Shown here in pieces: positions 1,258 through 24,395 of a stretch of 26,636 nt of DNA. Both the position numbers and the translations under genes were made by a program. The notes under the pieces were generated by a model that saw only the letters and a program-made list of their open reading frames with translations, was not told where the DNA came from and made no database searches. Each line of letters starts with the position of its first letter. The first letter of the stretch is position 1. Location: assembly GCF_000143415.4 (NCBI RefSeq), contig NW_003314414.1:57482-84117 (forward strand), read 5' to 3'. Origin of the DNA: Selaginella moellendorffii. Lineage: Eukaryota > Plantae > Lycopodiophyta.

Positions 1258-4200
1258 TTCTGAATCCTCGGGCGCTGCCAAGACGCTGTCTCTCCACCCA
1301 ATGGTATGGTCCCATTGCTCGAAGTGGCCATGCGAACGGGATTCTCGCAGCTGCCTGCCGTCTTGGGCCCGCTTTCCCCCCTTTTTNNNNNNNNNNNNNN
1401 NNNNNNNNNNNNNNNNNNNNNNNNNNNNNNNNNNNNNNNNNNNNNNNNNNNNNNNNNNNNNNNNNNNNNNNNNNNNNNNNNNNNNNTCCCCCAGGAACTT
1501 GGGAGGGTTCGTTCCACTGACGTATAGCTCAATTTCGCAAACTGCTCTTCTCGGGGGGGTGAATCCTGGCGGACAGTTTCCTCTTGCAAAGTCCTCCGTT
1601 CTGCCTGATCTTGAGCGTGACTGTTGTTGTTGTTCCACTGGCCCCGGTACCCTCTGTGTAGCCTGCTGTGGTGGCATTTCACCTTTATCTTGGACCATCT
1701 CTACTTCTGTGTCAGGTTCCTTTGCCTCCCCCACGGCTTGTCCTTCGAACCGTCTTCCTGTCGGCCTCCATTCTTTCCCTCGCGAAGCCCCCGACTGTGC
1801 TTTTTCCTGCTTGGCTGCTGTTGATTGCTCCCCTTGTCCCTCCTCCTTCTGTCCTTTGGTTCGAGGCTTCTTGCTTTCGCCACTGGAGGCTGCTTTCTCT
1901 GTTGTTTCCCTTTCCCCTCTGGCTCCACGTTTCTTGCCTTCCGATCCACTGTTTGCTTTCTGTCGGTCCTCTCCTGTTTCCTGCATTCCCCCCACACTTG
2001 CTCCTCTGGCCAAACAGTGTTTTCCAATGTGTCCCGTGCGCCAGCAAATAATGCATACACTCGGGTTTGGTAGCAGCATAACCCGAATCCTTCTTGGCCC
2101 TTGCCCCTTCCCTGGCTTGAGTTCTATCTCGAAGGGGATGTGAACTTCTTTCGGAATCCTGACTTTGACCGTGACTCTGTCTCCCACTGGCATTCCTTCC
2201 ATCCTTATGAACGTAGCAAACTGCCTCAGTATTGTCGCCAGGATCTTGTCTTCGGCCAGTGCCACGTCCATACCTTGTAGCTCAAAGTTCACAATCACAG
2301 ATGGGGGGAGTAGCATCCTTTTTTTCTGGGGCGTGAAATTGTTGTGATATGATCTGAAGAAGAGCTGAAAGTCTAACTGTGCGTACGCATCCACTCGCAG
2401 CAACTTGTGCCGAGCTCTCTCGTCCTTGATGACCACATTATAGCACTTTTCTCCCAGGTCCTTCACATCTTCTGCTAAAACCGTGACCAACATGTCGTGA
2501 TATGCCAGCGCTGCGCATACCCAGTCTGATACTAAAAAACCTGCCGGGACTGCTCCTTCCACTATTACATGTATGGTTTCCTCCGCTCTTCTAGCTTGCA
2601 ACTTGTTTAGCTCCTCCATGAATTCTTCCTGGTCTACTTCCAAGACATCGTTTGCCGGTCCGAATGGCATTCTCGTAGGCTTCCTTGGTGGCATTATCTC
2701 CTCGATCTTTACTGGAGGTGGCCCAAATGGGACTATGGGAGCATCCGGACATACTGACATTTTCGAATACTGTGGTAAAACCTTCGGGTATCCCATTTCC
2801 GGCTCTCGCTTCCCTTCCGGGGATATCACCACCTCCGGCACGAGTTCCTCCTGTATCCCTCTTGATGACGATGCTTCCCACTGTCTTTCCTCGTCCAACT
2901 TCCCTTTTCCCTTGTCCTCCCTCATTCTGTCATGAAGTTCTTGTCCCAACGGAGCTTCGTATGTTCGCGCCGCCTGTCCCATTCCGTCCGATCTCTCCTG
3001 TCTGGCTTCCTTTTCTTGCCTTTCCTTTACGGCCTTCTCCTTTTCCCTTTCAGCTTCTTCTTCCAGTAGCCTTTTTGCTGCCTCTTCTGCCAAGCGTCTA
3101 GCTTCTTGCTCTTTTCGCGCGTTGGCTTCCCTGATTGCCTTGAAGCAGGGGGGGCCCTTCTCCAGCGGGCAGCACGTCTTGATTCTTCGCTTAATCCCGG
3201 TTGGGGATCCTACCGCCGCTTCCTTCCCACTGGCTTCCTTTTCTGCCCTTGCCTCTGCGTTTTCCTCCCCGACTCCTGGCGATTCGTTGGTGGGGTTTCT
3301 TCTAGGCGCTCTCGTGAGTGGGGTTTCCTCTTCCTCACTTGCATCCTCTTTTCCCTTGTTTTCCACATTGGCTGGAGAGACTTCTCCTACCAGCGTTTCT
3401 TCTGGATCTAGTACCTCTGGAAGCTGCACACCCCTGGCTCTCCCTCCTGCAGTGCTCATCCTCGCCGTTGTCCTTGCTCGTGGCATTTTTCCCCCAGTGT
3501 CTTCCTCTCTTTTTTTTCCTTCTGATTCTAGCGTTCCTTTCTTTCCCTCCCTCTCCTTTTCCCCCTTTTCCCACCCTTCCGTTCCCTCCCCTTCTTCCAC
3601 TTCCCACTTTCCTTTCGGAGATTTTTCCCCCTTGCCTTTCCTTTCCCTTTCGCTTACCGCTTTGCTTTTGTCTTCACGCTGGCCCTCGTCTTTTACCGAA
3701 AACAATGCCCTCCGGATTGACAAGTCCCCTTTAAATAGTGCTGACCCTGGCTGCCACATGTCATTCCGCCATTTGCTGCCCGCTCCTCCACGTTTTTCTT
3801 CCCCCTTTCCTGTCCACGTTGATAGCGCACACGATTGTTTTCTTGGATTCTTCGGCTTCTCCTCGGACATGACCCCGCCACACGTCTCTTCCTTGGATTT
3901 TCTGCATGGATTTTCGCCCCATGCATCTCCACGTGTCGCCTTGTCCTTCATCCCCTCCTTTCCGACCGTGACCTGCTCGGTCTCTTTAATTCCCACTGGC
4001 TGCGTGGTGATGACGTTGTTACTGTCCTCGTTTTTCTCCCGATTTGCTACGATCTTGACAGTTATTCCGCCTTTCCCCCATATTAACTCCTCCCTTGGTT
4101 TTCCCGCACCCGCATTCATTCGCCGTCTAGCCGTTGTCTCGGGATTCCGGCCGCTCCCAAATCCCCCCATCTTGGTCCGCCGCATGTCCACCATCTCCTC

Positions 4201-4266
4201 CGTCCCTTCTTCTCCTCTCGGTCGCATCCTAGCCGTCCAGAGCAGCGGTTTTTTGCCTTTGAACAT
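1250..4266 (-). CDS. ORF1 (nucleic-acid-binding, CCHC knuckle), family A copy 1, interrupted by an assembly gap
   Basis: Homologous to 11877-14936, with ATG at 4266 and TAA at 1250-1252. The knuckle reads CIICWRTGHIGKHC here. It is absent from the ORF track, most likely because the 100-N gap joins it in frame to ORF2, which runs off the edge. Confidence 0.85.
1387..1486. other. Scaffold gap (100 N)
   Basis: Run of exactly 100 N. Together with 40 unmatched bases it replaces about 183 bp present in copy 2 (11974-12156). Confidence 0.99.
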
Positions 4267-5242
4267 CTTGATCTTTGCTTCAAGCTTTGCACTTCCTTTC
4301 TTGGGCGTTGCTCTGGCCAGCGAGCTTGGTTTTCCAACTCAAGTGGAGCTTCCCTCTTGCCCAATTACTTCTGCTCAAGATCTTGGTTGCTTAGAGCTTT
4401 TGAACTTTCAGACACAAGTTCCAAGTTCAAACTGATTTCAGTCGGCTAGCCCAGTTTTGCTGTGCCCAGAATCCCCCCGACTAGTACTCCAGATCATTGC
4501 CTTATTGCGACCGTTCCTCTTATCCTCCCAGCGCGCGCTCTTTCTTTTTCAGTGCATGCAGTGGAGAGTGCTTGGGGGGTTTTTGAGACTTTTCACTTAG
4601 CTTCTTATAGCCCGGCGATCTTACTCCTCTCTGGCCTGTTCCCCCGAGGACCGAAAGGACTCTCTTACAAGCCAATACTGTCAGCCGAGGGGGGGCCAGA
4701 AAGGATGTCGTTCGGAGCCATTCCAAAACTTGAGTTACGAGCCAAAAAATGCACGACGGTGGTGATTCAGTGGGATGCTTTTGATTCTTTTTTCTTTTTT
4801 CTAGCGCTTTGCGGCTGGAGGAGAGGCTTCGCTTCCAGCTTTGATCTTTAGCCTTTGTCTGGTGACCTCTTAGCTGAAAAAAACCGGGCCACCGACTTGA
4901 AATCAGCTTGGACCACACTGCGAGCTCTATCCACCCAGTCTCTTGCTGTAACTTGCGCGAGTTGCTCACACCCAGCGAAGAACCAAACTCACTGCCCAGC
5001 CACACTCAGAGCCATCGTGCTTCTGCCTGGAGCTTCCAGATCTATTCTACCAGCCAATGCAAAAAACCCTCTCGAATCTGGCTGCAGCCGAGAAGACCCA
5101 ACAGCGCGTCTCACTGCCGTCCAGCGCCAGTGCCACACTCAAGCGTCCACTCCACTCTCAGCCTGTGGCTGCGCTTCTCTCTTCTTGCCTTAGTGCCTTC
5201 CCTCTCCTCTCCGCCTTCACTCGTCATTCTCTCTTCTCTTCT

Positions 5243-5258
5243 TCTAGTCCGACTTTGT
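5243..5258 (+). repeat. Target site / TSD motif TCTAGTCCGACTTTGT (LSU rDNA-like)
   Basis: Lies exactly between the 5' end of A1 and the 3' end of C, and recurs at all four junctions. Confidence 0.93.
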
Positions 5259-5372
5259 TAAACAGGGCTTTTATTCACCAGAAAACCAAAACTGGGCTGA
5301 GTTTCGTTAAGGCACGAAATCAGCAAAGAGCCGCGACAGAAAGTTTCGTCGTGCACGAAACCAACAAAGAGC
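5259..5372 (-). promoter_or_regulatory. 3'-terminal RNA structure of C: two copies of the conserved stem-loop plus a putative pseudoknot
   Basis: Element-sense GUUUCGU-GCACG-ACGAAAC (5343-5361) and CUGAUUUCGU-GCCUUA-ACGAAAcUCAG (5297-5323), each preceded by GCUCUUUG. Confidence 0.7.
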
Positions 5373-6493
5373 AAGAGGGGGGGTCTTCACGTGGAGGTAC
5401 TTTGTAGAAAACTCGCCGCAGACTTTTATCTCAATCCATGGTCTTGAGTAGAGCCAGCAGAAAGATGATGGGAGAAGCTCCAAGTACCAAGGAACCAGCC
5501 TTTACGACTTGAGAGTGGAGTTACTGAAGAACTTGTCTCTCTTGATCCCTTAAGGAGAGACTCCAGGTGCCGAAGGGGTCAGTGCTGAGAGGGGAGTTGC
5601 TCACAAGCTTGACGGCCCATGCTGTCGCGATTGTGGAATCCAGAACCATCTGTCCAGTGGCGTCCACAATCACTCGTGAGTACTTGCCTCTCTTGATCCC
5701 CTCAAAGGGCATGCCTTACATCGTCTTTGTGCCTCGTCGAGTCTCTGAACTGAAGTGTATCTGACCATAAGTATTTCTTGAAACCTTGGAGGTACCCCAT
5801 GGACGTACACCGCTCTCCCTTGGTTTCTTCTTGTGCACTTTCATATCTGCCCCCCGCTGTAAACTGCTGTTGATCGGACTCTACTGAGACTCAGTACCAT
5901 CTTGTCACTCGTCGGTGTCGAGTTCTCTTGTTGGTGCCTTTGCTCTGGTCCATGTCTTTATCTTGAGTGTCTTCGTAGCTTCTACCAAAGAACTCATTCA
6001 TCGTGACCACACTAAACGCCCTCAATTGTCGTAGAGAAGCTGGATGTTTGCCCAAGTGTTGGTGACGAAATCCTCCTCACGTGGGGAGCCTTGTTTCCAA
6101 ACCTCCACCATTGTCGACCTTGAAGACGCCCACAAAGAGAACCACCTCCTTGATAAGTCATCAAGATCGACAAACTTGAAGCAAGGTCGCGTACGACACC
6201 ATCACTTCAAGCTCCCAATCCTTGGCAAGAATCACCTTACAAGTCTTGGGGATGAAGAGGATCTCCTTCACCTTGCTTGAGCTCACCACTGTCCATGGAG
6301 CAGGCCTCCAGACCCCCAGAAAGAAAACCGTGGAGTAGCGAAGGACAAGTCTAAGCAACAAGCCGAGGACTCAAATACTTAGATCTCCTTCCTCCACCGT
6401 TTGATCTTCCTGAAATTCTGAAGGCCGACTCTCCATATTCAGCTCCAGCTTCTCACCGACGTGATCTCGAAACGAGTGCATCAGCCAGGAGAA

Positions 6494-7165
6494 CCAGCCG
6501 CTCAAACTTACACTGGACTTCACTTGCTTGAACCATGAAACTTGAGCAGACATATCTTGCAGCCCAGCCGTTAGATCTTCATGAAACCTTGTAGACGCAA
6601 TCTCCCTAGTGTCTTCTAGCTTCTCACCAGAGCGATTTTCGGTCCGATGTCGCCTAAAGCAGCCACAGCCGACCCATTCTCGCCTCAAACCTTAGCCGCC
6701 CAAGTGCCTAGGGTCACTTGTATCTTCCCAGATCTTTATCCAAACGGCCTGCAGCTAGTGACAGAGTGTCTTTGCCTTGTAGCACCCCAGCCGTGGAGTA
6801 GAAAAGAGAAGCCCAGCCAGTGATGAGTGCCAGCCGCTCAAACTTCCACTGGCCCACACTTGCTTGAACCGTGAACTTCAAGCAGACGGATCTCGCAACC
6901 CAGCCGTTAGATCTTCTTGAAATCTTGTAGGTGCAGTCTCCCTGGTGTCTTCTAGCTTCTCACCGGAGCGATCTCAGATCAGATGCCGCATATAGCAGTC
7001 GCAGCCGACCCTTGCTCACCCCGAACCCTAGCCGCCGACATGACTAGGGCCACTTCGATCTTCTCGGATTTCAATCCAAACGGCCTGCAGATAGCGACAG
7101 AGTGTTGCCTTGCATTGTAGGAGCCCAGCCGTGGATAGAACAGAGAAGACCAGCCAGTGATGAGA
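6494..7165. repeat. Diverged tandem duplication, two ~336-bp units (6494-6829, 6830-7165)
   Basis: Both units start ccagccgctcaaactt and end ccagccagtgatgag. They share cagccgttagatcttc, gtgtcttctagcttctcacc and atccaaacggcctgcag. Confidence 0.92.
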
Positions 7166-7339
7166 GCAAAACAAACGATTTTTCGATGAAGTGCCCAATA
7201 TTGCTTGTGCCTTCGATTCTTGAGGGGGCGCCTTGATTCAGCAGCTCACAGGACTTCTACACTACCTCCTCTACACTAGATCTGGCCACAGAAGTCGACT
7301 CTCAATGCGCCATCTCCTCCTCTCCGTCTAGGGTTTTTT

Positions 7340-7370
7340 CTCTAGTCGGACTTTTGTAGTCCGACTTTGT
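7340..7370 (+). repeat. Double target motif (variant ctctagtcggacttttgt plus tagtccgactttgt)
   Basis: Seen directly between the 5' end of C and the 3' end of A2. Confidence 0.9.
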
Positions 7371-7450
7371 TAAACGGGGCCTTTTATTTTCCAGCAAAAA
7401 ACCAAAAAACTGGGCATGGTTTCGTTGGGCACAAAACCAGCAAAGAGCCT
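7371..7450 (-). promoter_or_regulatory. Structured 3' UTR of family A (stem-loop, putative pseudoknot, AATAAA)
   Basis: Element-sense UGGUUUUGU-GCCCA-ACGAAACCA (9 bp with one G-U pair), then CCAG-U6-GGUUUUUU-G-CUGG-AAAAU-AAAAGGCC. Confidence 0.7.
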
Positions 7451-10400
7451 TTATCTAGAGGAGCCTACAATGGAAGTACCTACAGAAAGGGGGGTTGCTC
7501 GTGAACTGGCGCCCGAAGGTCTTCCTAGATGTGTCACCTGGAACCATTCGTCTGGCGGTGTCCACATCCATTCCCGAGTACCTGCCTCCCCTTGCTTCCA
7601 CAAGAAATGCCAGATCTGCGCTTCTTTTTTTGCTTTTTCTGGGCCATTTCTCCCTCCTCTTTTTTCCAGTTGTAGGACACGGGCTGCTGCTGCAGTTATC
7701 ATTCTAGTCCACACCCGTGACGCCACCACCCTTGGTCCTTCTTCCCTATCATTAAAGATTCTGTTGCACCGGGCTTTCCATACTTCCCACATTGTAATTC
7801 CTCGCAGTAGGTCCACTATCTCTGTTGGGATTCCTTCTATGTCTGTTCGAGTTGTGTTAAGCTGGTCAAACCGCGGTGCCCCTTCTTCTCTTGATGTCCA
7901 TTTCCAAGAGTCTGTTCCATTTCGCATTCCTGCGGCAGCTTCGCCCCATACTGCCGCTCCATACGTGAGGCACACTTGTCTCTGGGAGTGTTGTTGCAGC
8001 AACCAGCACGTGCTTCTCCACACGTCTTGTGCGCTTTCACATTCCCATAATATGTGCCTTTGTGTCTCCCTCGCTCCACATTTGTCGCATGTTTGGTCCA
8101 CGAGGTGTATGTTCCTTTTTGATGGTAGCCTGTCTTGCATTGTCAACCACATGAAGTATCTTGTTTTTGCTGCCCAACGTCCTTTCCATAACTCTTTCAA
8201 TATCTCCTGCTGTGTCTTGTCCTGTATGTTGGCTCGTTTCATCCTTGATACCAGTAGTGAGTCACTGCGCGGCCGAATGAGCTTTCTCCCCAATCTTGTT
8301 TCGTAGGCAAAGAATTCTTCCTTTTTCCTTCCCCGCCAATTCCATTCCGTTGGATCCCAGGCCAGCTCGCTTAATTTTTGTTGTCTGAACCAGTACATCC
8401 TAGCTACCTGGCCTTCCGTTATCTTCGGGTCCATTGATGCTGTTTTCTTATCTATCCGTATAACACGTATCGGCTCTGTTCGTGACATGTCCGGTCGTAG
8501 GCTCTCCTTGGGCACTTTGTATGGTAATAGTCTCCCAGCCACCCCGACTTCGAACACATAACATTTCGTCTGGTCTTGAGTTGCCGTGTATATCACCTTT
8601 TCCTCGGCTATCCACCAGGCTGGTGTCGTTTCTCTGACTTCCTTAATGCTCTGTTTGCATTTCCCTTGTGCTTCTTCAAAGGCTGTTTCGAACTTTTTCA
8701 GCCTGTGTGCCGAGATTTCCAGCCCATAGAAAACCTTTAGTCTATCTCTGTTCATTTCTGTTTCCCCCGCTTTTATCATTGAGTCAGCTTCTGCAAATGT
8801 TCTCATCCCAGCACTGTGAAGGTCCCGGCATACTTTGTCTATTCCTTTGTCCGCAGTTTCCCCCAAACATTTCCCCTTATATTGAAATAGCTTATTAAGA
8901 AATATTGGTTGTCGATCCAACTCATAAGTGTTTGTCGGTTTTCTTTTTTCCAACTTGCTCTTGAATTCCTTCCACAATCTGAACAGTTTCCCAGAGAATG
9001 TATTTGGTTTTGGCATTTTCAGTGCGCCTTCCATGAACAGCCACCTTTCATCTTTTTCCCAGTTTTGCCTCGTGTGTTCTAGTCTGTCCGGAATGACTTT
9101 AAGCAGTTGATGGCGTAGTAGGAGTTTCCATGGTTGGTTTCCGGGCATGTTCATTCGGTGAAAGATTTTGAATAGCAGCGCCTTGCATTGTTCCTCTATA
9201 TCTATAATGTTTATCCCCCCATCCTGTTTTGCTCTTGTGACCGAGCTCCATCCAACCTTTGCCCCTCCTCTTGATACTGTTGCTTGGCCCTTCCATACAT
9301 ATGTCCTGATGAGCTTGTTCATTTCTTTTAGTGTTTTCTTGTCCAAGTTCCATGATGCCGCCAGGAACCAGATTGCTCCTAGCACTATATTATTCGCCAC
9401 TACACATCTTGCCGAGAAGGACAGCTTCCGTGATGCCCAAAATTTCAGTTGATCTCGAAGCTTTTCGACCGCCTTCTGATTCTGCGGGAGGGGGTCGTAT
9501 GCCCGGCCTATTTGGAACCCCAAGTATCTTGTTGTTTCTCCTTGTTTCAGCCACTTAAAATCCCACTCTCTCCCCCAATTTGGCGGGTCAGAGCTTGGCA
9601 GCCATATTCCCACCGATTTTCCCCAGTTTATTCGTGAGCCAGCTGCCAGGTTGAAGAAGTCCAAGTCCTTCTTGACCTTGCTCATGTTTTCCGGGGAGCC
9701 TGTCGTGATGATTCCTGTGTCATCCGCGAAGGCACTGGATTTCAACTGCCTTTCCTCTGTCCCTGCCAGGTCTTGTAGTGAGTCTCTGCACCCAGGCAAT
9801 ACCAGCCCTTCCGGTCCGTCCATCCTTGCCAGATAATGTGCTAAAGCATCGGCCACGAACAGGAACAAAAACGGGGCTAATGGACACCCTTGTCTTACTG
9901 ACCGTTGGAGCTTGATCGTGTTCCCTACTGTCCCGTTTATTGTGACCTTGCTTGATGCGCCTTGGTATAAGGTGGCCGTCCATCCTATAAACTCTTCAAG
10001 GATGCCGATCTTCCTCATTGTCGTTTGCAGGAATTCCCAGTCTACTCTATCATATGCCTTCTCGTAATCCAGGAGTATTATGGCCATCTCTAATCCTTGG
10101 TCTTTGACTTGTTCTTGTGTGAGCAACACTGTCAATATGTTGTCTACCAGTTGTCTTCCTTCCACAAACCCATTCTGGGTGTCATGTATCGTTTCTGGCA
10201 ATAACGGCCTTAATCTCTTGGCTAGCGCCTTGGCTACTATCTTGTATAGTGTATTTAGCATCGATATCGGTCTCCAGTTCTTGAGTAGAGATGCATCCCC
10301 TCCTTTTTTGGGAATGAGCGCAATTATTCCATCTATGGCTCCTGGGGGCCATTGTCCCGTTCTCATCACCTCCTTCCATGTGTCCAACACTACTGGCCCC

Positions 10401-11884
10401 AACCATTCCCAGTTTGCTTTATAATATGCTGGTGGCATCCCATCTTCCCCCGGCATCTTGTCATCGTTCAAGTCTCTAACTGCATCCTCTAGCTCTTCCA
10501 GTGTAAAGTTTCTGCACAGGGTCCGTGCTAAGGCTTCATCTACTTTCTGGGGCACCGACTGAAGAACTTCCTCCATGGCCGTTTTCCTTTCTTCTGTCCA
10601 CGGTTCTGCTCTAAACAGTCCTTGGTAGTATGTCTCAGCCATCCTGTGCATCTCCTGTAGGCTCGTATGCATCTCACCTTGATCATCCTTGAGCCCGAAC
10701 ATTGGCGGGGACGTAACTCTTGCTTTTATGGACTTGTAAAACTCTTTGTTTAGCGCATTCTCACTAATATGCCATTTGAGGTGCCCCGACCTTATAAACG
10801 CCTCCATTTTTTCCGCTTCCAGGGTGAAAAGTTGGGCTTTGGTTCTTGCTAGCTGAGTTCTCAGTGACGTATCCAGCGGGTCCAACCTGATCAATCTCTT
10901 AATGGCTTCAATATTTCTTCTTATTGCTTGCACTTTTTTGAAAACTTTTCTTCGCTTGTTCTGTGTCTTTTTCCGGATTTCATTGGCTATCTCAATTGTG
11001 AACTTGTGCAGATCTCCTCCTTCTTGCTGATTCCATCTTTCTTTTATATGGTCATTCATTTTCCCGTCCTCAAAGTTTTTCCGCGATATTGGTGCAGGCC
11101 TCTTTGTTCCCCACCTCTTTAAGATGGGAAGCGTCAAAGCCACCGAATTATGATCTGAGAAGTCTCTGTATCCCGTTGTTATATCTAATTTTCCACTATT
11201 CCGACACAGTTCGGGTGATATATAAAACCGGTCCAGTCTTCGTTGAATTCCCCGTTGTTGGTGCTCTTGCCATGTGAACCTTGGCTCGTGTTGTACAAAC
11301 CCTGGGATGTTGTATGTATCTTCTAGCCCCATCGCTAGCACTAGTTGTGCCCACATTGCTCTTTCCCTGCTTGTCCTTTTGTCTCTCATTTCTCCCCCAT
11401 CTTTGTCTAGCTCCTCTTCCACAAAGTTGAAGTCTCCCGTGACCATCCATGTTGAGGGTTGTGGAGGTATTCGGTGTACCAATTCATTCCAGAAATCTGC
11501 TCTTTCAGAGGAGCTTCCTGCTGGTGCATACACATTCAGGAGGCCTACTAGCATGTCTCCTATCTTGAACTGGACACACTGTGCTCTACCTGGTACCAGT
11601 ATTGCATGATCTTCAACCAAAGATTCCCACGTGCCTTTTACCACTATTAATGTGCCTCCACTGCATGATACTGCCGGATTCCAAAAATATTTCCCTTTCG
11701 TAAACTTATAAACTTGATCCATTCTTGAGAGCCTATGCTCTTGCACACACAAGAAATCAAAACATTGCGTCACACCTTCTACCTGTCTAAGATACTGTCT
11801 AAATTTCGTCTTTTTGTTATTCAGTGCTGATCTCTCCTTCTTCAGGCCTCCCACGTTCCACGTTCTCACGTTGATGTTAACCAT
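7451..11884 (-). CDS. ORF2: APE endonuclease + reverse transcriptase + C-terminal CCHC zinc finger (family A)
   Basis: EN motifs TWNV, QEH, NVYAP, GDFNF, FTW..RLDRFY and SDH. RT motifs KMPGEDG, NWRPISMLNTLYKIVAK, DYEKAYDRVDW, RQGCPLAP, AFADD and RYLG. Finger CDKCGARETQRHILWEC. The first ATG is at 11884 (the ORF track starts at an upstream TTG, 11908). Confidence 0.97.
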   Translation of the reverse strand: MVNINVRTWNVGGLKKERSALNNKKTKFRQYLRQVEGVTQCFDFLCVQEHRLSRMDQVYKFTKGKYFWNPAVSCSGGTLIVVKGTWESLVEDHAILVPGRAQCVQFKIGDMLVGLLNVYAPAGSSSERADFWNELVHRIPPQPSTWMVTGDFNFVEEELDKDGGEMRDKRTSRERAMWAQLVLAMGLEDTYNIPGFVQHEPRFTWQEHQQRGIQRRLDRFYISPELCRNSGKLDITTGYRDFSDHNSVALTLPILKRWGTKRPAPISRKNFEDGKMNDHIKERWNQQEGGDLHKFTIEIANEIRKKTQNKRRKVFKKVQAIRRNIEAIKRLIRLDPLDTSLRTQLARTKAQLFTLEAEKMEAFIRSGHLKWHISENALNKEFYKSIKARVTSPPMFGLKDDQGEMHTSLQEMHRMAETYYQGLFRAEPWTEERKTAMEEVLQSVPQKVDEALARTLCRNFTLEELEDAVRDLNDDKMPGEDGMPPAYYKANWEWLGPVVLDTWKEVMRTGQWPPGAIDGIIALIPKKGGDASLLKNWRPISMLNTLYKIVAKALAKRLRPLLPETIHDTQNGFVEGRQLVDNILTVLLTQEQVKDQGLEMAIILLDYEKAYDRVDWEFLQTTMRKIGILEEFIGWTATLYQGASSKVTINGTVGNTIKLQRSVRQGCPLAPFLFLFVADALAHYLARMDGPEGLVLPGCRDSLQDLAGTEERQLKSSAFADDTGIITTGSPENMSKVKKDLDFFNLAAGSRINWGKSVGIWLPSSDPPNWGREWDFKWLKQGETTRYLGFQIGRAYDPLPQNQKAVEKLRDQLKFWASRKLSFSARCVVANNIVLGAIWFLAASWNLDKKTLKEMNKLIRTYVWKGQATVSRGGAKVGWSSVTRAKQDGGINIIDIEEQCKALLFKIFHRMNMPGNQPWKLLLRHQLLKVIPDRLEHTRQNWEKDERWLFMEGALKMPKPNTFSGKLFRLWKEFKSKLEKRKPTNTYELDRQPIFLNKLFQYKGKCLGETADKGIDKVCRDLHSAGMRTFAEADSMIKAGETEMNRDRLKVFYGLEISAHRLKKFETAFEEAQGKCKQSIKEVRETTPAWWIAEEKVIYTATQDQTKCYVFEVGVAGRLLPYKVPKESLRPDMSRTEPIRVIRIDKKTASMDPKITEGQVARMYWFRQQKLSELAWDPTEWNWRGRKKEEFFAYETRLGRKLIRPRSDSLLVSRMKRANIQDKTQQEILKELWKGRWAAKTRYFMWLTMQDRLPSKRNIHLVDQTCDKCGARETQRHILWECESAQDVWRSTCWLLQQHSQRQVCLTYGAAVWGEAAAGMRNGTDSWKWTSREEGAPRFDQLNTTRTDIEGIPTEIVDLLRGITMWEVWKARCNRIFNDREEGPRVVASRVWTRMITAAAARVLQLEKRGGRNGPEKAKKEAQIWHFLWKQGEAGTREWMWTPPDEWFQVTHLGRPSGASSRATPLSVGTSIVGSSR

Positions 11885-14800
11885 TTCTGAATCCTCGGGT
11901 GCTGCCAAGACGCTGTCTCTCCACCCAATGGTATGGTCCCATTGGTCGAAGTGGCCATGCGAACGGGATTCTCACCGTTCCTCGGAACCTGAACGAGTTC
12001 GGCGCTTGTTCCACGAAATTATCTTCTCGAATCGAAAACCTCTGCGGGTTCCAGTTGAAGTTGTAGGCCAGAATATCCTCCAGAGTCCGGCCTATGTCTT
12101 GTCCAGGCGAGATCAGAATTGCCGGTGGGGCGTATCCAACTCTGTTGTCGATCCATTCCCCCAGGAACTTGGGAGGGTTCGTTCCACTGACGTATAGCTC
12201 AATTTTGCAAACTGCTCTTCTCGGGGGGGTGAATCCTGGCGGACAGTTTCCTCTTGCAAAGTCCTCCGTTCTGCCTGATCTTGAGCGTGACTGTTGTTGT
12301 TGTTCCACTGGCCCCGGTACCCTCTGTGTAGCCTGCTGTGGTGGCATTTCACCTTTATCTTGGACCATCTCTACTTCTGTGTCAGGTTCCTTTGCCTCCC
12401 CCACGGCTTGTCCTTCGAACCGTCTTCCTGTCGGCCTCCATTCTTTCCCTCGCGAAGCCCCCGACTGTGCTTTTTCCTGCTTGGCTGCTGTTGATTGCTC
12501 CCCTTGTCCCTCCTCCTTCTGTCCTTTGGTTCGAGGCTTCTTGCTTTCGCCACTGGAGGCTGCTTTCTCTGTTGTTTCCCTTTCCCCTCTGGCTCCACGT
12601 TTCGTGCCTTCCGATCCACTGTTTGCTTTCTGTCGGTCCTCTCCTGTTTCCTGCATTCCCCCCACACTTGCTCCTCTGGCCAAACAGTGTTTTCCAATGT
12701 GTCCCGTGTGCCGGCAAATAATGCATACACTCAGGTTTGGTAGCAGCATAACCCGAATCCTTCTTGGCCCTTGCCCCTTCCCTGGCTTGAGTTCTATCTC
12801 GAAGGGGATGTGAACTTCTTTCGGAATCCTGACTTTGACCGTGACTCTGTCTCCCACTGGCATTCCTTCCATCCTTATGAACGTAGCAAACTGCCTCAGT
12901 ATTGTCGCCAGGATCTTGTCTTCGGCCAGTGCCACGTCCATACCTTGTAGCTCAAAGTTCACAATCACAGATGGGGGGAGTAACATCCTTTTTTTCTGGG
13001 GCGTGAAATTGTTGTGATATGATCTGAAGAAGAGCTGAAAGTCTAACTGTGCGTACGCATCCACTCGCAGCAACTTGTGCCGAGCTCTCTCGTCCTTGAT
13101 GACCACATTATAGCACTTTTCTCCCAGGTCCTTCACATCTTCTGCTAAAACCGTGACCAACATGTCGTGATATGCCAGCACTGCGCATACCCAGTCTGAT
13201 ACTACAAAACCTGCCGGGACTGCTCCTTCCACTATTACATGTATGGTTTCCTCCGCTCTTCTAGCTTGCAACTTGTTTAACTCCTCCATGAATTCTTCCT
13301 GGTCTACTTCCAGGACATCGTTTGCCGGCCCGAATGGCATTCTCGTAGGCTTCCTTGGTGGCATTATCTCCTCGATCTTTACTGGAGGTGGCCCAAATGG
13401 GGCTATGGGAGCATCCGGACATACTGACATTTTCGAATACTGTGGTAAAACCTTCGGGTATCCCATTTCCGGCTCTCGCTTCCCTTCCGGGGATATCACC
13501 ACCTCCGGCACGAGCTCCTCCCATATCCCTCTTGATGACGATGCTTCCCACTGTCTTTCCTCATCCAACTTCCCTTTTCCCTTGTCCTCCCTCATTCTGT
13601 CATGAAGTTCTTGTCCCAACAGAGCTTCGTATGTTCGCGCCGCCTGTCCCATTCCGTCCGATCTCTCCTGTCTGGCTTCCTTTTCTTGCCTTTCCTTTAT
13701 GGCCTTCTCCTTTTCCCTTTCAGCTTCTTCTTCCAGTAGCCTTTTTGCTGCCTCTTCTGCCAAGCGTCTAGCTTCTTGCTCTTTTCGCGCATTGGCTTCC
13801 CTGATTGCCTTGAAGCAGGGGGGGCCCTTCTCCAGCGGGCAGCACGTCTTGATTCTTCGCTTAATCCCGGTCGGGGATCCTACCGCCGCTTCCTTCCCAC
13901 TGGCTTCCTTTTCTGCCCTTGCCCCTGCGTTTTCCTCCCCGACTCCTGGCGATTCGTTGGTGGGGTTTCTTCTAGGCGCTCTCGTGAGTGGGGTTTCCTC
14001 TTCCTCACTTGCATCCTCTTTTCCTTTGTTTTCCACATTGGCTGGCGAGACTTCTCCTACCAGCGTTTCTTCTGGATCTAGTACCTCTGGGAGCTGCACA
14101 CCCCTGGCTCTCCCTCCTGCAGTGCTCATCCTCGCCGTTGTCCTTGCTCGTGGCATTTTTCCCCCAGTGTCTTCCTCTCTTTTTTTTCCCTCTGATTCTA
14201 GCGTTCCTTTCTTTCCCTCCCTCTCCTTTTCCCCCTTTTCCCACCCTTCCGTTCCCTCCCCTTCTTCCACTTCCCACTTTCCTTTCGGAGATTTTTCCCC
14301 CTTGCCTTTCCTTTCCCTTTCGCTTACCGCTTTGCTTTTGTCTTCACGCTGGCCCTCGTCTTTTACCGAAAACAATGCCCTCCGGATTGACAAGTCCCCT
14401 TTAAATAGTGCTGACCCTGGCTGCCACATGTCATTCCGCCATTTGCTGCCCGCTCCTCCACGTTTTTCTTCCCCCTTTCCTGTCCACGTTGATAGCGCAC
14501 ACGATTGCTTTCTTGGATTCTTCGGCTTCTCCTCGGACATGACCCTGCCACGCGTCTCTTCCTTGGATTTTCTGCATGGATTTTCGCCCCATGCATCTCC
14601 ACGTGTCGCCTTGTCCTTCATCCCCTCCTTTCCGACCGTGACCTGCTCGGTCTCTTTAATTCCCACTGGCTGCGTGGTGATGACGTTGTTACTGTCCTCG
14701 TTTTTCTCCCGATTTGCTACGATCTTGACAGTTATTCCGCCTTTCCCCCATATTAACTCCTCCCTTGGTTTCCCCGCACCCGCATTCATTCGCCGTCTAG

Positions 14801-14936
14801 CCGTTGTCTCGGGATTCCGGCCGCTCCCAATTCCCCCCATCTTGGTCCGCCGCGTGTCCACCATCTCCTCCGTCCCTTCTTCTCCTCTCGGTCGCATCCT
14901 AGCCGTCCAGAGCAGCGGCTTTTTGCCTTTGAACAT
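11877..14936 (-). CDS. ORF1 (1019 aa): low-complexity/coiled-coil N-half, RRM/DUF4283-like middle, CCHC knuckle, conserved C-terminal domain
   Basis: Long ORF directly upstream of ORF2, with an E/K/R/A-rich helical stretch and CIICRHTGHIGKHC (C-x2-C-x4-H-x4-C). The middle and C-terminal blocks align with family B ORF1. The RRM call is an inference from position and pattern. Confidence 0.88.
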   Translation of the reverse strand: MFKGKKPLLWTARMRPRGEEGTEEMVDTRRTKMGGIGSGRNPETTARRRMNAGAGKPREELIWGKGGITVKIVANREKNEDSNNVITTQPVGIKETEQVTVGKEGMKDKATRGDAWGENPCRKSKEETRGRVMSEEKPKNPRKQSCALSTWTGKGEEKRGGAGSKWRNDMWQPGSALFKGDLSIRRALFSVKDEGQREDKSKAVSERERKGKGEKSPKGKWEVEEGEGTEGWEKGEKEREGKKGTLESEGKKREEDTGGKMPRARTTARMSTAGGRARGVQLPEVLDPEETLVGEVSPANVENKGKEDASEEEETPLTRAPRRNPTNESPGVGEENAGARAEKEASGKEAAVGSPTGIKRRIKTCCPLEKGPPCFKAIREANARKEQEARRLAEEAAKRLLEEEAEREKEKAIKERQEKEARQERSDGMGQAARTYEALLGQELHDRMREDKGKGKLDEERQWEASSSRGIWEELVPEVVISPEGKREPEMGYPKVLPQYSKMSVCPDAPIAPFGPPPVKIEEIMPPRKPTRMPFGPANDVLEVDQEEFMEELNKLQARRAEETIHVIVEGAVPAGFVVSDWVCAVLAYHDMLVTVLAEDVKDLGEKCYNVVIKDERARHKLLRVDAYAQLDFQLFFRSYHNNFTPQKKRMLLPPSVIVNFELQGMDVALAEDKILATILRQFATFIRMEGMPVGDRVTVKVRIPKEVHIPFEIELKPGKGQGPRRIRVMLLPNLSVCIICRHTGHIGKHCLARGASVGGMQETGEDRQKANSGSEGTKRGARGERETTEKAASSGESKKPRTKGQKEEGQGEQSTAAKQEKAQSGASRGKEWRPTGRRFEGQAVGEAKEPDTEVEMVQDKGEMPPQQATQRVPGPVEQQQQSRSRSGRTEDFARGNCPPGFTPPRRAVCKIELYVSGTNPPKFLGEWIDNRVGYAPPAILISPGQDIGRTLEDILAYNFNWNPQRFSIREDNFVEQAPNSFRFRGTVRIPFAWPLRPMGPYHWVERQRLGSTRGFRNG

Positions 14937-15899
14937 CGTGATCTTTGCTTCAAGCTTTGCACTTCCTTTCTTGGGCGTTGCTCTGGCCAGCGAGCTTGGT
15001 TTTCCAACTCAAGTGGAGCTTCCCTCTTGCCCAGTTACTTCTGCTCAAGATCTCGGTTGCTTAGAGCTTTTGAACTTCCAGACACAAGTTCCAAGTCCAA
15101 ACTGATTTCAGTCGGCTAGCCCAGTTTTGCTGTGCCCAGAATCCCCCCGACTAGTACTCCAGATCATTGCCTTATTGCGACCGTTCCTCTTATCCTCCCA
15201 GCGCGCGCTCTTTCTTTTTCAGTGCATGCAGTGGAGAGTGCTTGGGGGGTTTTTGAGACTTTTCACTTAGCTTCTTATAGCCCGGCGATCTTACTCCTCT
15301 CTGGCCTGTTCCCCCGAGGACCGAAAGGACTCTCTTACAAGCCAATACTGTCAGCCGAGGGGGGGCCAGAAAGGATGTCGTTCGGAGCCATTCCAAAACT
15401 TGAGTTACGAGCCAAAAAATGCACGACGGTGGTGATTCAGTGGGATGCTTTTGATTCTTTTTTCTTTTTTCTAGCGCTTTGCGGCTGGAGGAGAGGCTTC
15501 GCTTCCAGCTTTGATCTTTAGCCTTTGTCTGGTGACCTCTTAGCTGAAAAAAAACCGGCCCACCGACTTGAAATCAGCTTGGACCACACTGCGAGCTCTA
15601 TCCACCCAGTCTCTTGCTGTAACTTGCGCGAGTTGCTCACACCCAGCGAAGAACCAAACTCACTGCCCAGCCACACTCAGAGCCATCGTGCTTCTGCCTG
15701 GAGCTTCCAGATCTATTCTACCAGCCAATGCAAAAAACCCTCTCGAATCTGGCTGCAGCCGAGAAGACCCAACAGCGCGTCTCACTGCCGTCCAGCGCCA
15801 GCGCCACACTCAAGCGTCCACTCCACTCTCAGCCTGTGGCTGCGCTTCTCTCTTCTTGCCTTAGCGCCTTCCCTCTCCTCTCCGCCTTCACTCGTCATT

Positions 15900-15960
15900 C
15901 TCTAGTCCGACTCTTCTTCTCTCTAGTCCGACTTTGTGAAAAATTCTAGTCCGACTTTGT
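15900..15960 (+). repeat. Triple target motif (15900-15912 partial; 15921-15941 CTCTAGTCCGACTTTGTGAAA; 15945-15960)
   Basis: Seen directly between the 5' end of A2 and the 3' end of B. Confidence 0.93.
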
Positions 15961-16047
15961 CAATGGGGTTTTAATTAGTTTATCCTCTACAAACCATAGA
16001 GTCCGATTTCGACATGCTCGAAACCGGAAAAGAGCTCTTCAAGATTT
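15961..16047 (-). promoter_or_regulatory. Structured 3' UTR of family B
   Basis: Element-sense GCUCUUUU-CCGGUUUCGA-GCAUG-UCGAAAUCGG (10 bp with one G-U pair), then CUCUA-U-GGUUU-G-UAGAG...AAACC. Confidence 0.68.
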
Positions 16048-19000
16048 TTAGGGGGGGTGGGACGAGGGGGACAAAGTAGAACTGGTACTCGAGCCCGTGA
16101 TGTCTGATGTCCAAGCTACCAAAGTTCCTGGTGTGGAACTCTGTCGACTCGGGGAGGTACACGTGCCTTCGTTCCTGAACATGTGCTGCCAAATCCATAT
16201 TGGTGGCTTCCACGTCCATTCTTCTTCTCCAGCCTCGCTTCTTCCTCTAAAAAACGGCCACAGCTTCTTCTCCTTCACTATCTTCCCTTCCTCGCCTCGT
16301 TTGATCAGCGTGTCCAGGCGAGCTGCGAGTGAGACGATCAGTCTGGACCAAACCTTTGAGATAGTTGCTCGAGCCGAGGGGTTCATGTCCTCGAACAGCC
16401 TGGCGCAGCGAGCCTTCCATATCTCTGCTAGTGTGCATCCCCGAAGCGCATCGAAGAGCTCCTGGTGGAGATGCGTAATGTGTGTCCGAGTTTGGTTGAG
16501 TTGATCAAAGTGTGGGGCCTCGTTGTGTCTCCACTTCCATGCATCAGGATTCTTTGTTTTTCCCTGGATGAAGCTACCCCAGAGCGCTGATTCGTATGTG
16601 ATTGCAGCTCCTCCGGTTGACGTTCGTTTAAGTACCGCTGCTGCACCTTCCCATACTTCCTGTGCTGCCGGACATTCCCATAAGATGTGTCGCTGTGTTT
16701 CTGTGGCGCCACAGGTCTTGCAGGCTGTGTTCGGAAGATGAATGGCAACCAGAGAGGGAAGACGTTCTTGCTGGGCCAGCCACATGAAGTATCGGTTCTT
16801 AGCTGACCAGCGCCCCTTCCAGATCTTGTTGATGCAGTGTGAGTGGTTCCTGGAACTGATCTGTTGGGCCTTTGCTTTCCGGATGAGGGAGGATCGAGTC
16901 GGCACCCTGATCAGTTTGCGGCCTAGCTTGGTCTCATACTGGAAGAAGTCCTTGCACGTGGTTCCCTTCCAATGCCACTCTGCAGGATCCCACTTGAGTT
17001 CATCCAGGGTTTGTTGGCGGAACCAGTAGAGGCGAGCATATTGGTTTTCTGGTACCGATGGATCAACGTTGGCAGCTTTTTTCTCCATTTGAATCACTCT
17101 GATCGGTTTAGCTCTGCTCATGTCGGGGAGGTCCTTGTACTCGGGGGTAATGATGGGGTACAAGCGTCCAGCCTGTCCTGCCTCAAATACTAGTCCCGAT
17201 GCCATGTTGGGGAGGGTGCATACGATCGATTCATCCACCTTCCACCAACGATGGTGCTGATCTTCTTGCAGGTTTAGTTGTTCGAGGCATGCGTGTTTGG
17301 CTGCTAAAAAGGCTGTCTGGAATTTACGCATCCTGTGTTCCGAGATGATTAATCCATAGAAAGCTCTGATTCGGTCGCGGTTGTGGGCCGTCTGGTTGGG
17401 CTGGATCATGGTGTCTGCCTCTGCAAAGGTTCTCATCCCTGCTCTGTGCAGGTCTCTGCATGTCTGGTCCAGGCCGCGATCCTCTGAAGCTCCGAGCGTT
17501 TTACCCTGGACAGCGAAGAGTTTGCTCAGGAAAATTGGCTGCCGGTCCAGTTGTTCTTTGGTACGAGGTGGTTTACGTTCCAGCTTGCACTTGAATTGCC
17601 TCCAGAGCTTGAACAGCTTTCCTGAGAATGTGTGAGCCTTTGTCATTTTGAGTTTGGTATCTGAAAAGAGCCATTGTTCGTCTGACGCCCAGTTTTGTCT
17701 GGTGTGCTCGTTCCTGTTCGGGAGGACTTTCAAAAATTGTGCTCGCAGCAGTATTCTCCATAGTTGGTGGCCAGGCATGAGCATCCTTGTGAAAATCTTG
17801 AAGAGAAGAGCCTTGCATTGTTCTTCGATGTCAATGATATTGAGGCCCCCTTCGTGCTTCGGAAGTGTTACTGACCGCCAGTTGACCTTTGCTCCACCAC
17901 GCGACACGCAGGAGGAGCCTTTCCAGACATAGGTACGAATGAGTTGGTTCATTTCCTGGATCGTTCGCCTGTCCATGTTCCAGCATGCTGCCAGGAACCA
18001 GATTGCTCCAAGCAGGATGCTGTTAGCCACCACGCAGCGTGCTGAGAACGATAGTTTTCTGCTCGCCCAGAACTTGAGTTGATCCCTTAGTTTTGTTACA
18101 GCTTTTTGGTTCTGGGGTTCTGGATCATATTGGCGTCCCACTTGAAATCCAAGGTAGCGGGTGGTCTCCTCCGTGTCCAGCCATTTGAAACCCAGCGCCG
18201 TGCCCCATGTTGGAGGTCTGCCGGGGGGGAGCCATAGTCCTACCGATTTGTGCCAGTTTATTTTCGATCCCATGGCCTCATTGAAAAAATCCAGATCACT
18301 TTTGACGTTTGAGAGGTTCTCCGGTGATCCCTCCACGATCAGGCTTGTGTCATCTGCAAAGGCTGAGGATAGGAGGTCCTCCTTTGAGGCTTCGTTCATG
18401 TCCTGAAGCGTGGCACCACAGCCTGGAAGGGGCATACCTTTTGGACCATGTGGTCGGGCGAGGTAGTAGGCCAGAGCATCCGCAACAAACAGGAACAGGT
18501 ATGGTGCGAGGGGGCATCCTTGGCGGACTGATCTTTCAAGTTTGAAGGACTGTCCCATGGTTCCATTGATTGTAACCCTGCTCAATGCCGAGTGGTACAG
18601 GGATGCTGTCCATTCCACGAACTGCAGAGGAACTCCTTGCTTGATCATTATGGCCTGGAGAACTTTCCAATCCACCCGGTCGTAAGCTTTTTCAAAGTCC
18701 AGGAGAATGATTGCAATCTGCTCTATCGTGTCTTTGGTGTGTTCTTGCGCCAGCAGCACTGTTAGGAGATTGTCCACGATTTGTCTGCCGTCTACGAAAC
18801 CGTTCTGCGTCTCCTTGATTGTTTCTGGGAGCAGAGGCTTGAGGCGTGAGGCCAAGGCTTTTGCTACGATCTTGTACATGGTGTTCAGCATAGAGATGGG
18901 CCTCCAGTTCTTGAGGTGGGACATATCTCCTTTTTTTGGTATCAGAGCAATGATCCCATCCGTAGCTCCTTCCGGCCACTTCCCAGCTCGCATGGTTTCT

Positions 19001-20508
19001 TGCCACATCTTGAGAACTTCTGGTTCGATCCAGTCCCAGTTTTGTTTGTAAAAGGCTGGTGGCATGCCGTCCTCCGCTGGCATCTTGTCGTCCTTGAGGT
19101 CATCCAGGGCGTCCTTTAATTCTCGCAGCGTGAAAGGTCTCATTACTCCGGTGTTCATTGCTGGGGTGTACTTGGTCGGGATATGTTCCAGCACTCTTTC
19201 AAGTTTCTCTTGCCTGACCTCATCCCATGGTTCCTCCTTGAAAAGCTGCGAGTAGTAGTGTTCTGCCATGTTGTGCATGTCATCGATCTCTGTGTGCAGT
19301 TGCCCTTGTTCGTCCTTCAATCCGAACATTGGTGGGGAGATCACTTTAGATCTTATGGATCGATAGAACTCCCTGTTTAGCGCGAGTTCACTTGCGTGCC
19401 ATCTAATGTGTCCTGCTTTTAGGAAGGCTTCCATCTTGTCGGCCTCTATCCTTTCCTGTTGGCGCTTAACCTGGATTTTTTGAGCTTGTAGCCAGGGGTC
19501 GTCCGGGTTGCTGCGAAGGTCAGTGTTGATCGAGGCCAGGACACTCCGAACCTTTTGGACTGTGTTAAAGACACCTCTCCTATCTTTCCGGATCTTGGTT
19601 CGAGCCTTTTGAGCGATTTGAAGGGTGAAGGAGTGTAGGTTCCCCTTGTGTTTCTCCCATTGCTCGTGTGCCCAGTTATTGTTGGCTTGCTCCTCAAAGA
19701 ACTTCTTGGGTATGGCAACTGGCTTCCTTGGACCTCTCGATCTTCGAAAGGGAAGTGTGAGTCTAATTGGATGGTGGTCCGAGAAGTCCGTGTAGGTGTT
19801 GTCGATGTCCAACTTCCCCCCTTGCATGCACAGGTCCATGGTGAGGTAGAAGCGGTCCAGACGACGTTGTATGCCTCTGCGTTGACGTTCTCGCCATGTG
19901 AAACGTGGTTCGTGTGTCACAAACCCCGGGATCTCGTAAGCGTCGCAGGTGCCAATTTGTAAGAGGAATGAGTTCCATGCAAGGCGTTCCGCACGTGTAC
20001 GTCTATCCTGGATTATGCCTCCCTGTTTGTCCTCCTCGTGATCCACGAAATTGAAGTCTCCAGCCAGGATCCAGTCATCGATTCCAGAGGGAAGACGATG
20101 CTGCAGAACTCGGAAGAAGTGTGCTCGTGAGGTGGAGCGGGAAGCCGGGGCGTAGATGTTCAACAGGCCTATGGTTCGGGCATTTACTTTTAACACTATC
20201 ATGTGAGCACGTCCAGGGATTAGGATCTGGTGCGAGGTGCTGAGGGATTGCCATGGTCCTTTGGCGATGATGAGGGTTCCTCCTCGCCTTCCAACTGCAG
20301 GGTTCCAGAAGTGTTCGCCTTGTGAAAACTTAAAGATTGTCTGGTGTTCTTGCATTCTATGCTCCTGGAAACAGAAAAAGTCACACTTTCCTATCACTCC
20401 TTCTAACTGGCGAAGGTATTGTCGTAGCCTCGCCTTCTTGTCATTCCATAGCACTCCGTCTTTACTAATGCCTCCTACATTCCATGACAGCACACTGAGA
20501 TCAGTCAT
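16048..20508 (-). CDS. ORF2: APE endonuclease + reverse transcriptase + CCHC zinc finger (family B, 1486 aa)
   Basis: Motifs SWNV, QEH, NIYAP, GDFNF, RLDRFY, SDH; NWRPISMLN, DFEKAYDRVDW, RQGCPLAP, AFADD, RYLG; CKTCGATETQRHILWEC. Confidence 0.97.
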   Translation of the reverse strand: MTDLSVLSWNVGGISKDGVLWNDKKARLRQYLRQLEGVIGKCDFFCFQEHRMQEHQTIFKFSQGEHFWNPAVGRRGGTLIIAKGPWQSLSTSHQILIPGRAHMIVLKVNARTIGLLNIYAPASRSTSRAHFFRVLQHRLPSGIDDWILAGDFNFVDHEEDKQGGIIQDRRTRAERLAWNSFLLQIGTCDAYEIPGFVTHEPRFTWRERQRRGIQRRLDRFYLTMDLCMQGGKLDIDNTYTDFSDHHPIRLTLPFRRSRGPRKPVAIPKKFFEEQANNNWAHEQWEKHKGNLHSFTLQIAQKARTKIRKDRRGVFNTVQKVRSVLASINTDLRSNPDDPWLQAQKIQVKRQQERIEADKMEAFLKAGHIRWHASELALNREFYRSIRSKVISPPMFGLKDEQGQLHTEIDDMHNMAEHYYSQLFKEEPWDEVRQEKLERVLEHIPTKYTPAMNTGVMRPFTLRELKDALDDLKDDKMPAEDGMPPAFYKQNWDWIEPEVLKMWQETMRAGKWPEGATDGIIALIPKKGDMSHLKNWRPISMLNTMYKIVAKALASRLKPLLPETIKETQNGFVDGRQIVDNLLTVLLAQEHTKDTIEQIAIILLDFEKAYDRVDWKVLQAIMIKQGVPLQFVEWTASLYHSALSRVTINGTMGQSFKLERSVRQGCPLAPYLFLFVADALAYYLARPHGPKGMPLPGCGATLQDMNEASKEDLLSSAFADDTSLIVEGSPENLSNVKSDLDFFNEAMGSKINWHKSVGLWLPPGRPPTWGTALGFKWLDTEETTRYLGFQVGRQYDPEPQNQKAVTKLRDQLKFWASRKLSFSARCVVANSILLGAIWFLAACWNMDRRTIQEMNQLIRTYVWKGSSCVSRGGAKVNWRSVTLPKHEGGLNIIDIEEQCKALLFKIFTRMLMPGHQLWRILLRAQFLKVLPNRNEHTRQNWASDEQWLFSDTKLKMTKAHTFSGKLFKLWRQFKCKLERKPPRTKEQLDRQPIFLSKLFAVQGKTLGASEDRGLDQTCRDLHRAGMRTFAEADTMIQPNQTAHNRDRIRAFYGLIISEHRMRKFQTAFLAAKHACLEQLNLQEDQHHRWWKVDESIVCTLPNMASGLVFEAGQAGRLYPIITPEYKDLPDMSRAKPIRVIQMEKKAANVDPSVPENQYARLYWFRQQTLDELKWDPAEWHWKGTTCKDFFQYETKLGRKLIRVPTRSSLIRKAKAQQISSRNHSHCINKIWKGRWSAKNRYFMWLAQQERLPSLVAIHLPNTACKTCGATETQRHILWECPAAQEVWEGAAAVLKRTSTGGAAITYESALWGSFIQGKTKNPDAWKWRHNEAPHFDQLNQTRTHITHLHQELFDALRGCTLAEIWKARCARLFEDMNPSARATISKVWSRLIVSLAARLDTLIKRGEEGKIVKEKKLWPFFRGRSEAGEEEWTWKPPIWIWQHMFRNEGTCTSPSRQSSTPGTLVAWTSDITGSSTSSTLSPSSHPP

Positions 20509-24378: not shown

Positions 24379-24395
24379 CTCTAGTCCGACTTTGT
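24379..24395 (+). repeat. Target site / TSD motif CTCTAGTCCGACTTTGT
   Basis: Lies between the 5' end of B and the 3' end of A3. Confidence 0.93.

Follow-up and report, generated by a model that had tools for sequence, protein, structure and literature searches.

Introduction

Pairs of an autonomous LINE and a non-coding rider are already known from animals, and the element described here probably belongs to that kind. In the trypanosomatid pairs RIME/ingi and NARTc/L1Tc, the two ends of the autonomous LINE make up its non-autonomous companion, RIME being a pure end-to-end fusion of 0.5 kb. The HeT-A/TART telomere arrays of Drosophila are one-directional head-to-tail stacks in which an RT-less element is found with an RT-encoding LINE; HeT-A encodes Gag and attaches to chromosome ends. 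The R2 SIDEs and R2/R1 hybrid SIDEs of Drosophila (Eickbush & Eickbush 2012, PMC3414825) are non-coding derivatives which retain both termini, 5' and 3', of a LINE specific for rDNA, lie at the exact rDNA site of the partner with its typical target duplication, and are believed to exploit the TPRT machinery of that partner by way of its 3' UTR. They are short, simple internal deletions with an HDV-like 5' ribozyme, inserted in sense orientation, whose partners are R2, with its restriction-like endonuclease, or R1, in animals. In crocodilians, the retroposon SINEU shares the target preference of Tx1-Mar, a LINE of the L1/Tx1 clade, from which its mobilisation in trans was inferred; SINEU is short, has snRNA-derived heads and targets a Mariner transposon (Kojima 2015, PMC4494074). 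The Persaeus SIDE of Lepidoptera is described as an internally deleted LINE derivative which spreads with its partner CR1 Zenon, is not site-specific, belongs to the CR1 clade and occurs in animals (PMC6740152). An rDNA-specific LINE with a non-coding partner was not found described for a lycophyte in the papers searched, and a 2024 review of rDNA and transposable elements names no such pair for lycophytes; the same review lists 'R2' in rice and maize, citing Kojima & Fujiwara 2004 (PMC10946416).

Here we describe a non-coding element, C, from a window of 26.6 kb (the whole stretch of DNA analysed, from the spikemoss Selaginella moellendorffii, a lycophyte), which by analogy would work most like the R2/R1 SIDEs and like SINEU riding Tx1-Mar. 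As the R2/R1 SIDEs do with theirs, C appears to keep both ends of a LINE, sits at the site of its candidate partner, family A, with that partner's target duplication, and would use its TPRT machinery through the 3' UTR. Unlike them, C measures 2.1 kb, has no ribozyme match and carries in its middle foreign DNA that includes repeats; it is oriented antisense to the 26S-like motif, and the candidate for its partner is a lycophyte LINE of L1 type, with an APE endonuclease. Like SINEU, C shares its target with a LINE, but the target is an rDNA-like motif and C has no head taken from an RNA gene. The likeness to Persaeus is that of an internally deleted LINE derivative with a partner, and C differs from it in its apparent site specificity. 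Between the two ends that RIME joins directly, C holds 1.6 kb of other sequence, and in contrast to HeT-A it encodes nothing and stands in a stack whose elements are separated by a regenerated 16-nt target.

Results

A head-to-tail stack of retroelements on a 26S-rDNA-like target

The window was found to be a one-directional, head-to-tail stack of retroelements on the minus strand, in the order A / C / A / B / A, with the elements kept apart only by copies of the 16-nt target TCTAGTCCGACTTTGT. Its features are as follows.

1 to about 5242, minus strand: family A, 5' part
5243-5258, plus strand: perfect 16-nt target TCTAGTCCGACTTTGT, adjoining the 3' end of C and serving the left A copy, too, as its target on the upstream side
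5259-7339, minus strand: element C, 2081 bp
7341-7356, plus strand: degenerate target TCTAGTCGGACTTTTG, 13/16, adjoining the 5' end of C
7371-15902, minus strand: family A, full-length L1-type LINE and candidate helper
15961-24381, minus strand: family B
24396 to the end of the window, minus strand: family A, 3' part

In a scan with the 16-mer, all matches of at least 12/16 to the plus-strand form of the target proved to be element junctions, and the 13-mer core TAGTCCGACTTTG gave seven matches with two mismatches or fewer (0.5 expected), all on the plus strand and all at junctions. The target copy at 15922-15941 extends into ...TTTGTGAAA, which we take to be plant 25S/26S rRNA sequence; we call the target of C 26S-rDNA-like. 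C is bounded by target motifs, as the original prediction had stated, with 16-nt copies on both flanks (16/16 at 5243-5258 and 13/16 at 7341-7356), and its insertion site and target duplication match those of its candidate partner A. Inside C (5259-7339) the best match to the 16-mer was only 11/16; since target copies stand at its two ends only, C is a single insertion unit rather than two. Base 7340 may be part of the target or of C, and the 13/16 copy is followed by a 14-nt target copy (7357-7370) that is part of the next A element.

The junctions themselves were closely similar among the elements. On the plus strand, the perfect target at 5243-5258 is followed by TAAACAGGGCTTTTATT; in the sense direction C ends ...GAATAAAAGCCCTGTTTA / ...AATAAAAGCCCTGTTTA and runs into the target ACAAAGTCGGACTAGA, and family A ends ...AAATAAAAGGCCC(C/T)GTTTA / ...AATAAAAGGCCC(C/T)GTTTA before the same target, the 3' junction (...GTTTA then ACAAAGTCGGACTAGA) being identical in the two. 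C starts (G)AAAAAACCCTAGACGG... directly after the 13/16 target copy, and the 5' junctions of C, A and B all lie directly after ...ACTAGA.

The 5' junction of the full A copy (15901-15960) carries three whole or partial target copies, one of them extended to ...TTTGTGAAA, a heterogeneity that is typical of TPRT. The GA-rich leader of this copy also has a 10-nt TCGGACTAGA insert relative to the left A copy (5226-5242).

Families A and B

Families A and B have an element length of 8.4-8.5 kb. In the full A copy, ORF1 (11877-14936) and ORF2 (7451-11908) lie on the minus strand, and the ORF2 of both families has Exo_endo_phos (APE), RVT_1 (RT) and zf-RVT domains, the two ORF2 proteins being 56.5% identical. 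ORF2 of A is intact and matches human LINE-1 ORF2p structures (E 1e-41). The three A copies in the window are 98.9-99.6% identical to one another and are therefore young; the candidate helper, A, is present and, to judge from its sequence, looks active. To look for a LINE closer to the remnant in C (below), the last 285 residues of A ORF2 were used as a query, which gave nothing at E <= 1e-5 among candidate proteins of 0.55-1.75 times the query length.

Several further observations were made on these families. An indel of about 43 bp separates the left A copy from the full one in the ORF1 region (1347-1486 against 11975-12156), a stretch left unaligned by blastn. The ORF1 region of B (20501-23587, minus strand) is split into ORFs at 21998-23587 and 20501-21985, and B ORF2 (16048-20508) is intact; only the piece at 20501-21985 is weakly similar to A ORF1 (23% identity, E 1e-11), and no Pfam domain was found in either piece. 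Two plus-strand ORFs antisense to A ORF1 (3122-4435 and 13699-15105; 437 and 468 aa), which fall where the purine skew is strongest, are probably composition artefacts and not genes.

The 3' end of C carries an A-type tail with a doubled hairpin

From its 3' to its 5' end, C was resolved into the following parts.

5259-5333, minus strand: A-type 3' tail, with box GGCUCUUUGCUG, hairpins P2 and P3, AAUAAAAG and terminal CCCUGUUUA
5334-5400, minus strand: extra upstream copy of box and P2, GCUCUUUGUUG GGUUUCGU-GCACG-ACGAAACU
5401-5576, minus strand: spacer of ~175 nt, not in A at this position
5577-5700, minus strand: decayed ORF2 C-terminal remnant, last ~38 codons, A-type, with two in-frame stops
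5701-6396, minus strand: unique non-coding body without similarity to A or B DNA or proteins
6397-7167, minus strand: tandem subrepeats of ~336 bp, about 2.3 units
7168-7339, minus strand: 5' leader, with AGACGGAGAGGAG-GAGATGGCGC (7307-7329) common with the start of A and AAACCCTAG common with that of B

The predicted identity of the 3' terminus of C with that of family A was upheld, in that both end ...CCCTGTTTA and the last 74 nt of C are 80-81% identical to A tails (80 aligned columns); neither the box GGCTCTTTGCTG nor the end CCCTGTTTA differs between the two. The box GCUCUUU, P2, P3, an A-rich stretch and a short terminal motif are common to the tails of A, B and C, and stringent LINEs rely on 3' signals of this kind (PMC3414825). 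The P2 stem is GGUUUUGU/ACGAAACC in A and CCGGUUUCGA/UCGAAAUCGG in B; in C it is GAUUUCGU/ACGAAAC (about 10-11 bp) with the bulge shifted. The P3 stem is CCAG/CUGG in A and C and CUCUA/UAGAG in B. RNAalifold, run on four tails, predicted a P2 helix of 12 pairs with both-sided changes at 3/12, and the P2 of B has both-sided changes at two pairs. Inside P2, C differs from A by U.G to C-G and by G-C to A-U with the shifted bulge, and pairing is kept. MAFFT misaligns P3 between A and C.

Box and P2 occur as two tandem copies in C, compared to one in A and B. The extra copy is preceded by a C-run and AGTACCTCCA, the latter matching GGTACTTCCA of A, and 5343-5372 of C matches A 7419-7448 at 87%. The doubled box and P2 might, by their sequence, be a doubled signal for ORF2p binding.

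Both ends of C appear related to a LINE of the A lineage

Upstream of the tail, C was found to retain the decayed end of an ORF2. In tblastn, 5577-5690 aligned with residues 1441-1478 of A ORF2 at 45% identity with two stops (E 4e-4), and in tblastx and blastn the remnant was collinear with the tail, on the same strand and about 75-77% identical to A at the DNA level. Counted by hand on the aligned sequences, it is nearer to A (17/38) than to B (about 8/38). The distance from remnant to tail is ~215 nt longer in C than in A, which corresponds to the second box/P2 copy plus the ~175-nt spacer, and a 22-nt stretch of the spacer (5528-5549) is repeated at 5679-5700 in the remnant region. As the tail (80% identical to A) is hardly better conserved than the adjoining dead remnant (75-77%), rate alone does not demonstrate selection on the tail of C.

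At the other end, the first 50 nt of C match A best at A's own 5' start, with AGACGGAGAGGAG-GAGATGGCGC against AGGCGGAGAGGAGAGGGAAGGCGC (20/24), within the first 33 nt of C and at an offset of 10 in C and 15 in A. This score was reached by 3 of 3000 shuffles, and the next-best score inside A was 23 against 26; the motif is short and purine-rich, and for its purine richness we count it as moderate evidence only. AAACCCTAG is present on the minus strand of both C (7328-7336) and B (24359-24367), within ~25 nt of their 5' starts (62/3000 shuffles), and resembles the plant telo-box, AAACCCTA. GGCGC lies ~30 nt from the start in all three element types. From their sequence, AAACCCTAG and GGCGC may be internal promoter or start boxes.

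With an ORF2 C-terminal remnant and an A-like start motif both retained, the two ends of C point to an A-lineage LINE, and the view of the original prediction that C is not an obvious deletion derivative is not supported as it stood. C looks like an end-retaining derivative of an L1-type LINE of this lineage, and its source, on sequence divergence, would be closer to A than B is, yet about 20-25% diverged from the present A copies. These LINE-derived ends bring C nearer to the SIDE/RIME type than had been thought, though its 1.6-kb middle is not LINE sequence.

The middle of C is non-coding and repeat-bearing

The earlier claim of a body unrelated to A or B stood for 5701-7306, where no similarity to either was detected at DNA or protein level and where the interior is not a simple LINE deletion; it fell for the ORF2 remnant (5577-5690) and for the 20/24 start motif. 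A tblastn search of C with five A and B proteins returned the ORF2-end match only, the other HSPs being rejected (E >= 0.05, scattered and often on the wrong strand). Remnants of APE, RT and zf-RVT were not detected in C by tblastn or Pfam, the last 38 ORF2 codons being the only detectable part, and the proposed check for decayed coding remnants thus turned up this ORF2 end and, by tblastn, no further remnant of the A or B ORFs.

The longest ORF in C is 105 aa, in agreement with the predicted lack of a long ORF. It had no relative in a word-indexed search of a 5.8-billion protein set, and by exact look-up neither seven C ORFs nor three from A or B had a counterpart in the protein collection. 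Pfam gave no credible match on 15 ORF pieces of C; two DUF matches were rejected as sub-threshold (14 bits).

The ~336-bp repeat was found by a repeat search and blastn and was missed by Tandem Repeats Finder. It comprises two full units (6482-6830 and 6814-7167) with 81% identity to each other, followed by an incomplete third (6397-6468) that has diverged further. Substitutions between the units are spread evenly over the three codon phases (23/18/18) and so give no hint of coding. When metagenomes were scanned for an 18-mer that the two full units have in common, five loci were returned, none with extended similarity to the window, which we therefore regard as chance matches.

ARAGORN found no tRNA in C, and no Rfam family, ribozymes included, matched in the window at E <= 0.1, in line with the predicted lack of a tRNA- or 5S-like head. 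The sole Rfam match up to E 1, a miRNA model, was rejected (22 bits against a gathering score of 80). C was also considered as a Pol III-transcribed SINE and rejected, because it has no tRNA, 7SL, 5S or snRNA head and, at 2081 bp against under about 0.7 kb, is too long; nor is it a SIDE in the strict sense, since its interior is not a simple deletion. The middle 1.6 kb of C is foreign or unrecognisable non-coding DNA.

Discussion

A retroposon probably copied in trans

From the anatomy of C, the homologies of its ends, the target and junctions it shares with A and its lack of coding capacity, all read directly from the DNA, we infer that it was transcribed and mobilised in trans with A, or a LINE like it, as helper. 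C is probably a SIDE/RIME-like non-autonomous retroposon, copied by A-type ORF2p via its 3' hairpins and hence placed at the same target. On the simplest account, its ancestor would be a LINE of the A lineage whose two ends survived when the coding interior disappeared and other sequence was acquired. The parts retained would be about 35 nt of the 5' start and about 440 nt of the 3' end, the latter consisting of the decayed last ORF2 codons and the 3' UTR, and some other non-coding DNA, about 1.6 kb with tandem subrepeats included, would have taken the place of the coding interior.

In the mechanism that we propose, C RNA would be bound in trans by A-type ORF2p through the box, P2, P3 and the terminal GUUUA. 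The APE endonuclease would nick the 26S-sense target strand after ...GACTTTGT, and the freed 3' OH would prime reverse transcription exactly at the RNA end, with the cDNA beginning at the terminal A; a read-through transcript with downstream ACAAAGUCGG could base-pair with the primer. The 16-nt target duplication would arise from a second nick at a distance of 16 nt. Copying in trans by an A-type ORF2p would account for the identical 3' junction, the shared target and the 16-nt duplication. As each insertion would regenerate the target on both sides, later A, B or C insertions would land alongside, which would explain the head-to-tail stack.

One copy of C was seen in the window. It looks older than its neighbours, given the 81% identity of its repeat units, its 13/16 5' flank and the youth of the A copies, and the perfect targets adjoining it are those of young A copies. 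C may be a fossil, or its helper may be another, unseen LINE that is more closely related to it than A.

Other origins of C

This age bears on a different account, which we consider unlikely, which treats C as one dead copy, formed when an old A-lineage LINE inserted at this site and its interior later disappeared in place through deletion together with unrelated insertion or duplication; on this view C never moved as a 2.1-kb unit. The single copy in the window is consistent with it, as is the contrast between the old C (repeat units 81%, flank 13/16) and the 99% identity among A copies; LINE-derived ends are expected from deletion in place too, and stacked dead rDNA units can accumulate rearrangement. 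However, only 38 codons remain of roughly 8 kb of ORF1 and ORF2, and the replacement must have been clean, sparing the 5' start.

The abrupt end of A homology near 5700 might instead mark a template switch, about 440 nt into TPRT of an A-like RNA, in which the enzyme moved on to an unrelated RNA of cellular or repeat origin and copied 1.6 kb of it, leaving a one-off chimera. For R2 and L1, jumps of this kind from LINE RNA onto other templates are on record (PMC3414825), but the tail of C is 20% diverged from the A copies present, and neither an A-like start motif at the right offset nor a start directly after ...ACTAGA, as in the full-length A and B, would come from a random RNA. We regard such a chimera as very improbable.

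The sharp homology boundary, and the fact that LINEs are commonly 5'-truncated, would also fit two separate things, a 5'-truncated A-like LINE fragment (5259 to about 5700) beside an unrelated element or filler (5701-7339), which we find hard to credit. No target copy stands at the internal boundary, where the best candidate (5715-5730) was rejected as no better than background, being 10/16 and one of 73 such plus-strand matches in the window, although the outer flank of C still matches at 13/16; from 5732 onward there is no LINE-type tail, and LINE-type start features are found at the 5' end, 7339. That C is a decayed third autonomous LINE family, its ORFs eroded beyond recognition, is suggested by the coding ancestry of the 3' 440 nt that the ORF2 remnant reveals but is very unlikely for 2.1 kb, a length into which the ORF1 and ORF2 of this group could not nearly fit (A and B measure 8.4-8.5 kb), with no RT, APE or zf-RVT remnants (tblastn with A and B proteins; Pfam on all ORF pieces) and a body including tandem repeats that carry no codon-phase signal.

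Significance

Beyond the preferred reading of C as a retroposon copied in trans, we entertain, as a speculation that is quite unlikely to hold, that C represents a family of long, head-less, repeat-bearing retroposons which, with two L1-type LINE families, builds self-extending one-directional stacks on a 26S-like target that is regenerated in a plant genome. Its doubled hairpin for ORF2p binding and its own 5' start boxes would then let C compete with its helper or drive transcription within the stack, making for a plant counterpart of the division of labour between HeT-A and TART, with rDNA in place of telomeres.

If C is a propagating family, this plant would possess the complete set-up of a parasite living on a parasite that is familiar from the rDNA LINEs of animals, namely a site-specific LINE and a non-coding rider which gains the same site specificity via the 3' RNA signal of that LINE. 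When A, B and C are compared, a candidate for the minimal recognition module can be marked out, about 75 nt long and consisting of the box, two hairpins and the terminal GUUUA, which may be of use for RNA-guided, site-specific insertion by an APE-type L1 enzyme instead of R2.
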